Origin: Hyaloraphidium curvatum SAG 235-1
Taxonomy: Eukaryota > Fungi > Monoblepharomycota
Length of the DNA stretch: 64,000 bases
Assembly (NCBI GenBank): GCA_025558095.1
Contig: JAIVFI010000003.1
Span: 558,001-622,000, forward strand
Reading direction: 5' to 3'
The notes under the pieces are model-generated. The model was not told where the DNA came from, did not search any database, and saw only the letters and a program-made list of their open reading frames with translations. A program made the position numbers and the translations under genes. Numbering within the stretch: the stretch's first letter is position 1; each line of letters opens with the position of its first letter. Below are positions 39,884 to 42,009 of this stretch, piece after piece.

Positions 39884-40031
39884 TCCCGCGGGGGACGCTT
39901 GAGCGGGTGGAGGCGCACGCGTCGACCACGCCCCGACCCTGCGCAACCTCCCAAGGCTGGCCACGATCCACTGCTCAGAAAAAGATCGCATTTCCTGCAC
40001 AATTTCACACATGCTCTAACCGGTGCAGCTT

Positions 40032-40095
40032 GCCGGCGAGTTCGGCACGGTCCCAGGCCGCAGCCTTTAGGGATCGCGCTTCATGACGCCCCCGT
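40032..40095 (-). promoter_or_regulatory. Eukaryotic SECIS element, form II, in the SelK 3' UTR
   Basis: mRNA reads ...GGCGUC AUGAA GCGCGAUCCC U AAA GGC UGCG GCC U GGGACCGUGC CGAA CUCGCCG. It has the AUGA/GA core, a 10-bp helix II with one mismatch, apical AAA and a mini-stem. Confidence 0.85.
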
Positions 40096-40197
40096 TCCGT
40101 CTCGGAGATCGGCTCGTCGCCGATGCCCGGGGGCAGAGTGCCAGCTCGCTACGCCGTCCTCGACATTGGGGCGGCGCGGGCCCAGATGGACCCGCGC

Positions 40198-40721
40198 CTA
40201 CCGACCTCAGGATCCTCCACCTCCCGGCATGCATGCCGGATCGGCTGCGGTGCTCAGTCCGTGCACGTTGCCTCCCATGCGCCTCGTCGGCCCGCCGCCG
40301 GACCGGTCCCATGCCGATGAAGAGCCGCGCCTGCCGAGCTGCGCGCTGCCGTTGCCGTTGTACGTGCTCGCGGCCTTGCGCGGCGCGGCAGACGCCGAGA
40401 CCGGCTGCGATGCCGCCTGGGGCTGCGAGTGCGGAGCGAGTAGAGAGGAGGAAAGGCGTCGTTGATGTGGCAGGCGTCGAGGGCGGCCAGGGAACGGCAG
40501 GAAGTCAGCCAACGTCAGAACCCCTGCGCGGCCCGAGGGGCCGCGGGCCCTCCCGAAGCCCTCCTCGGCCGAAAGGAGCAACGCACCGAAAGCAGCGTCA
40601 TGAAGAAGAGGTAGATGATGTTGAGCAGCTGCCAAAGGTAGCCCTGGGCCGACTGGAGGGGGTTCCTCCAGACCTCCTTGGTCGGAGCGTCCACCGTGCC
40701 GTCACCGAGGACATACGGCAT
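40198..40721 (-). CDS. SELENOK: Selenoprotein K (SelK/SelG family) with Sec-encoding UGA at 40207-40209
   Basis: MPYVLGDGTV.., TM helix YLWQLLNIIYLFFMTLL, intron 40586-40423, G/R/P-rich tail ending GGGGS-UGA-G-R-UAG like the GGUGR end of SELENOK. SECIS lies downstream. Confidence 0.9.
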
Positions 40722-40887: not shown

Positions 40888-42009
40888 ATGGCCCCGCTCG
40901 TCCTTGTCGAGAAGGATGGTCCGATCACAATCGTCACGATAAACAGGTCTCCGCGTCATATGCGCCGGCAGTCGCGGAGGAATGCTGACGCGTAGTTTCG
41001 TGCCTCCCACACAGGCCGGAGGCGAAGAACGCCGTGGGTATCACCCCCGGTGCCTCCGTGTACTTTCATCGGACCCACGGGCGATCTCTCCGGCCTCCAG
41101 GTCAACAGGCCGACTGCCCAGGCGCTCGCAGATGCCTTCCGGGACTTTGACCGCGACGAGAGCTCCAGCGTCGCGATCCTCACTGGTGCCGGGGGCACGT
41201 TCTGCGCAGGAGCAGATCTTCGGTAGGCTTTTTAACCCGTGTGAGCCATTGCGGACGGCTGACCCTCAAGGGCGCGCAACAACGCAGTGCCGTGCTCTCG
41301 AACGATCCCCAGCTGATGAATCGCATGGAGACGGACATGTTGGCCGACGGACCCATGGGCCCGACGCGGATGGTCCTCAGCAAGCCGGTGATCGCCGCCG
41401 TGGAGGGCTTCGCGGTCGCAGGGGGCCTGGAGCTGGCCTGTTGGACGGACCTGCGGGTGGCTGCGGAGGACAGCGTGTTTGGAGGTGCGCTAGTGGAGGC
41501 ACGCTGACCGGAGCATCTTTGCTGAACGGCTTGGGGACCGACAGTGTTCTGCAGGTCCAAAGGAGTACCGCTGGTAGACGGCGGCACCGTGCGGTTGCCG
41601 AGATTGATAGGAATGTCTGCAGCCATGGACCTGATCTTGACTGGTGAGCGGTTAGCCTTGGAGCTCGTTCTGCTGTATCTGATCGGCGAGTTGGTGCACC
41701 ACAGGACGGGACGTGCCGGCAAAGGAGGCCAAGGCCATGAATTTGGTCAACCGCCTCGCGCCCAAAGGCCAGGCACTCGCCGAGGCCAAGAAGCTCGCCG
41801 CACTGCTCGCCTCCCATCCGCAGACCTGCATGCGCAACGACAGGCGGTCGGCCTACGCTGCGGAGGGACGATCGGAGGGCGACGCGCTGCGGGAGGAGTT
41901 CGCCTTGGGGCTGGCGAGTTTGCGGACTGCCGACCAGCAGGGCGCGATCTCGAGCTTCTTCTCGGAGAAGAAGAAGGGGGAGATATGGACCGGCGGATCA
42001 AAGCTGTGA
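40888..42009 (+). CDS. Enoyl-CoA hydratase/crotonase-family protein with PTS1 (SKL), multi-exon
   Basis: VTINR|PEAKNA, FCAGADL, KPVIAAVEGFAVAGGLELA, GVPLVDGGTVRLPRLIG, ends GSKL-stop. Confidence 0.92.

Follow-up and report, generated by a model that had tools for sequence, protein, structure and literature searches.

Locus, transcript and family membership

The window analysed here, a 64,000-nt stretch of contig JAIVFI010000003.1 of Hyaloraphidium curvatum SAG 235-1 (Monoblepharidomycetes, Chytridiomycota in the broad sense), carries on its minus strand a gene of the selenoprotein K (SelK) family that is split into two exons and starts with the ATG at 40721. By translation, exon 1 (40587–40721) contributes 45 codons for a short N-terminus and a single hydrophobic, transmembrane-type segment, hydropathy peaking at residues 27–45 (mean Kyte–Doolittle value 1.42, 19-residue windows). 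A phase-0 GT..AG intron of 164 nt (40423–40586) leads to exon 2, whose 71 codons up to the UGA (40210–40422) encode an apparently disordered tail rich in glycine, serine, alanine, proline and arginine (69% of its residues together), with the motif RRMGGNVHGL and then the terminus ACMPGGGGS. Directly behind lie an in-frame UGA (40207–40209), which we propose as a selenocysteine (Sec) codon, and, in frame with it, GGT CGG (Gly-Arg) and the true stop TAG (40198–40206 in all, TAG at 40198–40200). With Sec, the predicted protein has 119 residues, ends in ...CMPGGGGS-Sec-Gly-Arg and carries Sec as its third residue from the end. The first-pass annotation had read this terminus from TGA 40207–40209 and GGT CGG TAG as ...PACMPGGGGS-U-G-R, which is exact; the 164-nt intron upstream had gone unmentioned. 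Exon 2 matches one public protein (P0001, residues 46–116, 100% identity, contig of 1.15 Mb), a 116-aa hypothetical H. curvatum protein that corresponds exactly to the two exons joined and breaks off at the UGA. The public annotation of this gene is thus correct in its splice and three residues short in its protein, as might be expected of the under-annotated selenoproteome that had been suspected from the window alone.

Transcription of the locus is documented by contigs from a public run (X1) that holds 69% of the words sampled and whose RNA label was a guess, the RNA origin being inferred from a splice joint. One X1 contig joins 40422 to 40587 and skips 164 nt (ends CT..AC on the plus strand), and since this is exactly the predicted GT..AG intron, we take the data to be RNA-derived. 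A second contig, 317 nt long, runs unbroken over 39993–40309 and so places the UGA, the TAG, a hairpin at the stop codon and the SECIS element in one transcript piece; because it spans the UGA without a gap, no splice removes that codon, and the mRNA does not end ahead of the SECIS, the outcome that would have told against Sec insertion. Beyond the SECIS, the rest of the 3′ UTR extends over 39993–40031 (minus strand), its outer limit being the contig end at ~39993, which is no proof of a poly(A) site. The X1 contigs match the SelK locus without any difference.

The spliced protein P0001, which served as the reference for profile scoring, matches the Pfam family SelK_SelG (PF10961) at 37.1 bits (cut-off 23.3) over profile positions 2–84 of 86. 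Each exon contributes its own part of this match: exon 1 alone scores 20.6 bits at positions 2–41 of 86 and exon 2 alone 8.4 bits at positions 51–85, collinear with exon 1. Because the match extends to the last positions of the profile, the UGA, directly past the last matched positions, falls at the extreme profile end, where SelK carries Sec. Family membership and the frame together bear out the earlier proposal of a hidden selenoprotein K with a UGA at the Sec position.

Distant homologues are few. An exhaustive phmmer search gave nine matches among 1.84 billion representatives, a profile search gave 24 (all with PF10961) and a word-based search with P0001 returned only P0001. The named matches of the profile search come from diatoms, a dictyostelid, a conifer and one record labelled “archaeon,” and no fungal SelK other than the query is among the 24. 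All three distant homologues whose DNA was retrieved have a TGA at the end of the predicted protein, with one or two further sense codons ahead of a stop: the locus of the diatom Epithemia reads GGG-TGA-GGA-CGG-TAA (U-G-R), a TARA contig has one codon between TGA and stop (U-S) and so has a Logan contig (U-G).

Several observations accompany these homologues. The Epithemia locus (L022:1670–1815) contains a perfect 12-nt inverted repeat (GGAGTCACTCTT / AAGAGTGACTCC) that starts a few nucleotides past the SelK stop and has arms ~110 nt apart; it may be another structure adjacent to the UGA and stop in a distant SelK gene. The “archaeon” record (P0022, 86 aa) is annotated as a “SelK/SelG family selenoprotein” in a MAG, and finding this eukaryotic family of membrane selenoproteins in an archaeal bin points to bin contamination, or else is notable in itself. 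In H. curvatum SelK, a cysteine (40225–40233 region of the window) precedes Sec by 6–9 residues (C-x5-8-U), and such a cysteine is common to three relatives (see below) and to the diatom and TARA homologues. The H. curvatum clade differs in this from human SELENOK, which is not known to have a cysteine 6–9 residues before Sec. By analogy with SELENOS, a Cys–Sec selenenylsulfide pair in H. curvatum SelK is conceivable.

The neighbouring genes are close on both sides. An X1 contig runs from SelK exon 1 to 40947 and into the next exon of a plus-strand enoyl-CoA hydratase (crotonase) gene, its loose end beyond 40947 reading P-E-A-K-N-A-V-N; a crotonase intron starts near 40948. As one contig links both genes, SelK and the crotonase gene appear to share or overlap a head-to-head promoter region of ~170 nt. 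Downstream lies a PHO80-type cyclin gene (PF08613, 93.6 bits), whose X1 contig ends at 39903 with an Illumina adapter, only ~90 nt from the SelK contig end at 39993, which indicates very compact gene spacing.

Selenocysteine machinery in the genome

The first-pass annotation had supposed a complete Sec machinery in this organism, and we searched for its components in the H. curvatum assembly (32 Mb, 55 contigs). Five of the six stand: tRNA-Sec (78.2 bits, above cut-off; called SeC with anticodon tca by ARAGORN), SepSecS (198.9 bits over three exons), the selenophosphate synthetase SelD/SPS (C2:990953–991939; 169.8 bits summed), eEFSec and SBP2, while the sixth, PSTK, is represented by a weak candidate only. 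Both tRNA-Sec and eEFSec, whose absence from the genome would have been fatal to the proposal, are therefore present. The SelD match contains one in-frame TGA, a sequence pattern consistent with SPS itself being a selenoprotein in H. curvatum, as in other Sec-using fungi. The evidence for eEFSec is a match to its domain III (PF21208, 54.5 bits), a model with zero matches in the control genomes, and human eEFSec is the sole PDB match for two pieces of the locus; a 604-aa ORF that was the top match of the bacterial selB model (TIGR00475) proved to be mitochondrial IF2 and was rejected. For PSTK, a P-loop ORF matches an archaeal model (TIGR03574) at 30.5 bits, and there is one KTI12-family locus.

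The SBP2 homologue lies on contig C31, where two collinear exons of the L7Ae region have the SBP2 chain 7zjw_B as their best PDB match (residues 666–699 and 712–763). These L7Ae pieces were searched alone, as PDB matches of the long C31 ORF are swamped by ankyrin repeats. The other L7Ae matches that were considered as SBP2 turned out to be ribosomal proteins (L7A on C10 and L30 on C32), and only the C31 locus is SBP2-like. In that gene (C31:198350–199650, i.e., L033:1501–2800), the frame with the second L7Ae piece continues into the ankyrin repeats, which have PDB matches of up to 72.7 bits; a C-terminal ankyrin domain would be an unusual feature for SBP2, and the locus may hold one gene or two. 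The same contig has two frames of equal length (343 aa) lying ~12.5 kb apart (C31:77548–78204 and 90101–90757), both of which match positions 42–256 of the SelD model at ~42 bits, below the cut-off; they may represent a duplicated gene of a SelD-related family.

Recoded end, SECIS element and stop-codon hairpin

Three orthologous loci were reached via phmmer fragments: L019 (a 22-kb contig from a Logan run), L020 (a JGI metagenome) and L021 (a Logan run). The gene order of L019 is that of the window (i.e., a divergent enoyl-CoA hydratase gene upstream, SelK, and a PHO80-type cyclin gene downstream, with 60% identity between the two cyclins), L020 likewise has a PHO80-type cyclin gene downstream of SelK, and L021 is too short for neighbours. 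All three keep TGA-Gly-Arg-TAG: the codons after the TGA are GGA AGG TAG in L019, GGT CGG TAG in L020 and GGC AGG TAG in L021, such that the two post-UGA codons differ synonymously only (GGT/GGA/GGC and CGG/AGG) and the variable sites coincide exactly with the synonymous positions. Mean pairwise identity is 0.88 over the 12-nt recoded end, compared with 0.66 in the preceding coding sequence and 0.40 in the spacer beyond. The conservation of the two following codons, as judged from sequence, supports read-through of UGA 40207–40209. As the Gly and Arg codons lie partly within the stop-codon hairpin described below, RNA structure may add to their conservation.

In the 3′ UTR, a type II SECIS element occupies 40032–40093 on the minus strand, with AUGA at 40081–40084, a helix II of 10 positions, AAA at 40066–40068, an apical mini-stem and CGAA at 40041–40044. 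A form-II SECIS some 115–125 nt past the UGA had been predicted, and it is found, with its AUGA/CGAA core, AAA and mini-stem, at 122 nt (UGA 40207–40209 to AUGA 40081–40084); the minimal UGA–SECIS spacing is ~50–110 nt. Nine of the 10 helix II positions are paired, helix I has four to five pairs, and the apex, where the AAA is bulged 11 nt after AUGAA and followed by a mini-stem of 3–4 bp and a 4-nt loop, is that of type II. The Rfam model SECIS_1 (RF00031) aligns to 40032–40093 over its full length (1–64) at 28.7 bits, short of its gathering score of 35, with AUGA, the unpaired AAA and GA all on consensus. In a scan of the 32-Mb genome on both strands, the SelK element is the third of five matches to this model (E 0.019), and chance does not account for a match of this score positioned directly past a SelK-type UGA on the gene’s own strand. 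Folding energy depends on the segment chosen: the minimum free energy of the whole 82-nt SECIS segment is no better than that of shuffles in this GC-rich sequence (z = −0.43), whereas the segment of helix II and apex alone stands out against shuffles (z = −3.1).

The SECIS core recurs at the orthologous loci, where AUGA lies 160–179 nt past the TAG, AAA follows 11–12 nt on and (C/U)GA closes the helix. The flanks GC...AUGA(A/C)GC and GC(C/U)GA(A/U)CU are kept across loci in a 3′ UTR that is otherwise divergent. The inner SECIS segments of H. curvatum, L020 and L021 fold into a closed helix II with an apical mini-stem, and that of L019 folds in a shifted register. Between lineages, helix II positions 4, 5 and 7 change on both sides (C-G/A-U, G-C/C-G and U-A/A-U, by inspection), a comparison that rests on the inner-segment folds plus inspection, constrained folds being noisy. 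Across the four loci, MAFFT with RNAalifold did not recover the SECIS helices, whose bulges and apical lengths differ. SECIS_1 scores L021 at 20.4 bits and gives no match in L019 or L020, whether run on the whole loci or on the 3′ UTRs alone; these two loci have longer apical parts. In a survey of fungal selenoproteins, SECIS elements were found in 5 of 16 fungal selenoprotein genes and many were said to escape standard tools (bioRxiv 10.1101/314781), a remark that the misses in L019 and L020 match.

Could the UGA be an ordinary stop, so that a Sec-less SelK would end ...GGGGS and the 3′ UTR hairpin would be a chance likeness to a SECIS or serve another role? The public annotation does end there, and the SECIS falls below the Rfam gathering score, yet we regard this as very unlikely, given that the UGA occupies the family’s Sec position, that in three orthologues the TAG and both codons ahead of it are preserved, with no changes but synonymous ones, that the SECIS core is conserved in a UTR otherwise 40% identical, that its match is third best in 32 Mb and that the genome retains Sec machinery.

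A second conserved structure lies at the Arg and stop codons (40170–40202, minus strand). This hairpin has a main 11-bp stem (40173–40198) that starts at the G of the TAG, with a short extension that pairs the Arg codon, and thus begins 4–8 nt after the UGA; its dG is −29.2 kcal/mol (z = −3.7). Hairpins occur at the same place in all three orthologues, with dG values across the four loci of −25 to −29 kcal/mol and z of −3.0 to −4.3 against shuffles; the outer stem is kept, and the loop-proximal parts vary in sequence and length. RNAalifold finds nine consensus pairs, of which two are changed on both sides and one by a wobble, and a third covarying pair is seen by eye (arms GGCGCG/CGCGCC vs. 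GGCAGC/GCUGCC in L021).

By analogy, the stop-codon hairpin resembles a Sec redefinition element (SRE) and is a candidate for an element of that kind. The SRE of SELENON (SEPN1) is a stem-loop next to the Sec UGA (PMC3541580, summarising Howard et al., 2005, 2007). Like it, the H. curvatum hairpin is stable, is kept across related lineages and follows closely on the Sec UGA; unlike the SELENON SRE, which is coding, it takes the last sense codon and the true stop into its stem and is mostly 3′ UTR.

Recoding and the place of SelK in the fungal selenoproteome

Taken together, the gene structure, its transcription and splicing, the family assignment, the SECIS-like hairpin in the same transcript, the conserved recoded end and the machinery genes leave us highly confident that the SelK gene genuinely encodes a selenoprotein, is expressed and conserved and has a type II SECIS, and that its fungal host possesses Sec machinery. 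Two further alternatives have been weighed, and both are more remote than an ordinary stop. Under the first, SelK would be a decaying relic, still transcribed and no longer translated past the UGA, e.g., for want of one machinery component such as PSTK. The lack of a convincing PSTK match is what such decay would predict; however, this family is divergent and the model used was archaeal only, the other machinery matches contain no internal stops beyond the ones that introns would produce and the Sec-type TGA of SPS, and UGA-Gly-Arg-stop and the SECIS core are visibly constrained in four lineages, and we consider decay extremely improbable. The second, equally hard to credit, is that the locus is contaminating algal or protist DNA, in which a Sec-containing SelK is common: although diatoms and a dictyostelid supply the nearest named homologues of SelK that were retrieved and Hyaloraphidium itself was historically taken for a colourless alga, the gene sits inside a 1.15-Mb contig of the 55-contig H. 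curvatum assembly, between housekeeping genes of the same GC content and intron style, is matched by the RNA contigs without a difference, and shares its genome with Sec machinery on at least six other contigs.

For the genuine selenoprotein gene that we favour, the known eukaryotic mechanism offers a model. The SBP2 homologue would bind the SECIS in the 3′ UTR of the SelK mRNA, and the SBP2–SECIS complex would recruit eEFSec with Sec-tRNA(Sec) to a ribosome holding UGA 40207–40209 in its A site; Sec would then be inserted, two further codons read and translation ended at the TAG. The stop-codon hairpin would probably slow the ribosome or in some other way tip the balance from termination to recoding, like the SRE of SELENON. 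The product is probably, by comparison with animal SelK, a membrane-anchored ER protein with a redox or adaptor function and a reactive Sec at its flexible cytosolic tip.

Compared with the SelK proteins of animals, algae, diatoms, dictyostelids and trypanosomatids (PF10961), H. curvatum SelK belongs to the same family by profile and shares the short N-terminus, the single hydrophobic segment and an RRMG-like motif in a tail rich in Gly, Pro, Arg and Ser, as well as a Sec in third-last place (the U-G-R end being that of the diatom homologue and of human SELENOK, GGUGR) and a SECIS in the 3′ UTR. It differs from them in its fungal host, in its longer tail (119-aa protein; 94 aa in human SELENOK) and in having a conserved hairpin at its stop.

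Fungi used to be regarded as lacking selenoproteins, and only a handful of early-branching Sec users are now known. The 2018 preprint of Mariotti et al. describes seven fungal selenoprotein families (SPS, AhpC, MsrA, DI-like, TR, SelenoU and SelenoH) in five species including Gonapodya prolifera, with SECIS elements that fit the eukaryotic consensus and lie 40–420 nt after the stop; SelK is absent from the seven families, in agreement with the first-pass annotation, and H. curvatum from the five named species (bioRxiv 10.1101/314781). Later papers cite nine Sec-using fungal species, and Amses et al. (2022, PMC9457484) report Sec in 11 early-diverging fungal genomes, the passage concerned naming neither the species nor the selenoprotein families. 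H. curvatum and G. prolifera are of the same class (Monoblepharidomycetes) and have in common a eukaryotic-type machinery and, probably, SPS as a selenoprotein; SelK lies outside the families that the 2018 preprint lists for Gonapodya and the other early-branching fungi. A literature search, in which Mariotti et al. was represented by the 2018 preprint rather than the 2019 version, found no paper combining Hyaloraphidium curvatum with a selenoprotein, and we provisionally regard SelK in Fungi as previously unreported. The SelK family, the Sec mechanism and Sec use in the Monoblepharidomycetes are already known; what is new is the occurrence of SelK in Fungi, the truncation of the public model and a conserved hairpin that spans the stop.

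At a level of confidence that stays somewhat below even, we tentatively propose the fuller reading that SelK is a previously unlisted, clade-retained member of the fungal selenoproteome whose recoding depends on a pair of cis elements: a SECIS of type II, and a hairpin that covaries and spans the stop. If this is true, no recoding stimulator of the SRE type would have been seen in fungi before this hairpin. Its position over the termination codon would be unusual and might let it modulate termination, two codons past the UGA, as well.

With the H. curvatum gene, the fungal selenoproteome gains a family that is membrane-anchored and non-enzymatic; the gene is also a concrete example of a selenoprotein truncated by public annotation. 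Its SECIS and UGA-proximal hairpin are short cis elements on which Sec recoding can be tested in a fungus, and a fungal SelK favours a scenario in which the ancestor of Fungi inherited a wider set of opisthokont selenoproteins, to be lost one by one in later evolution.
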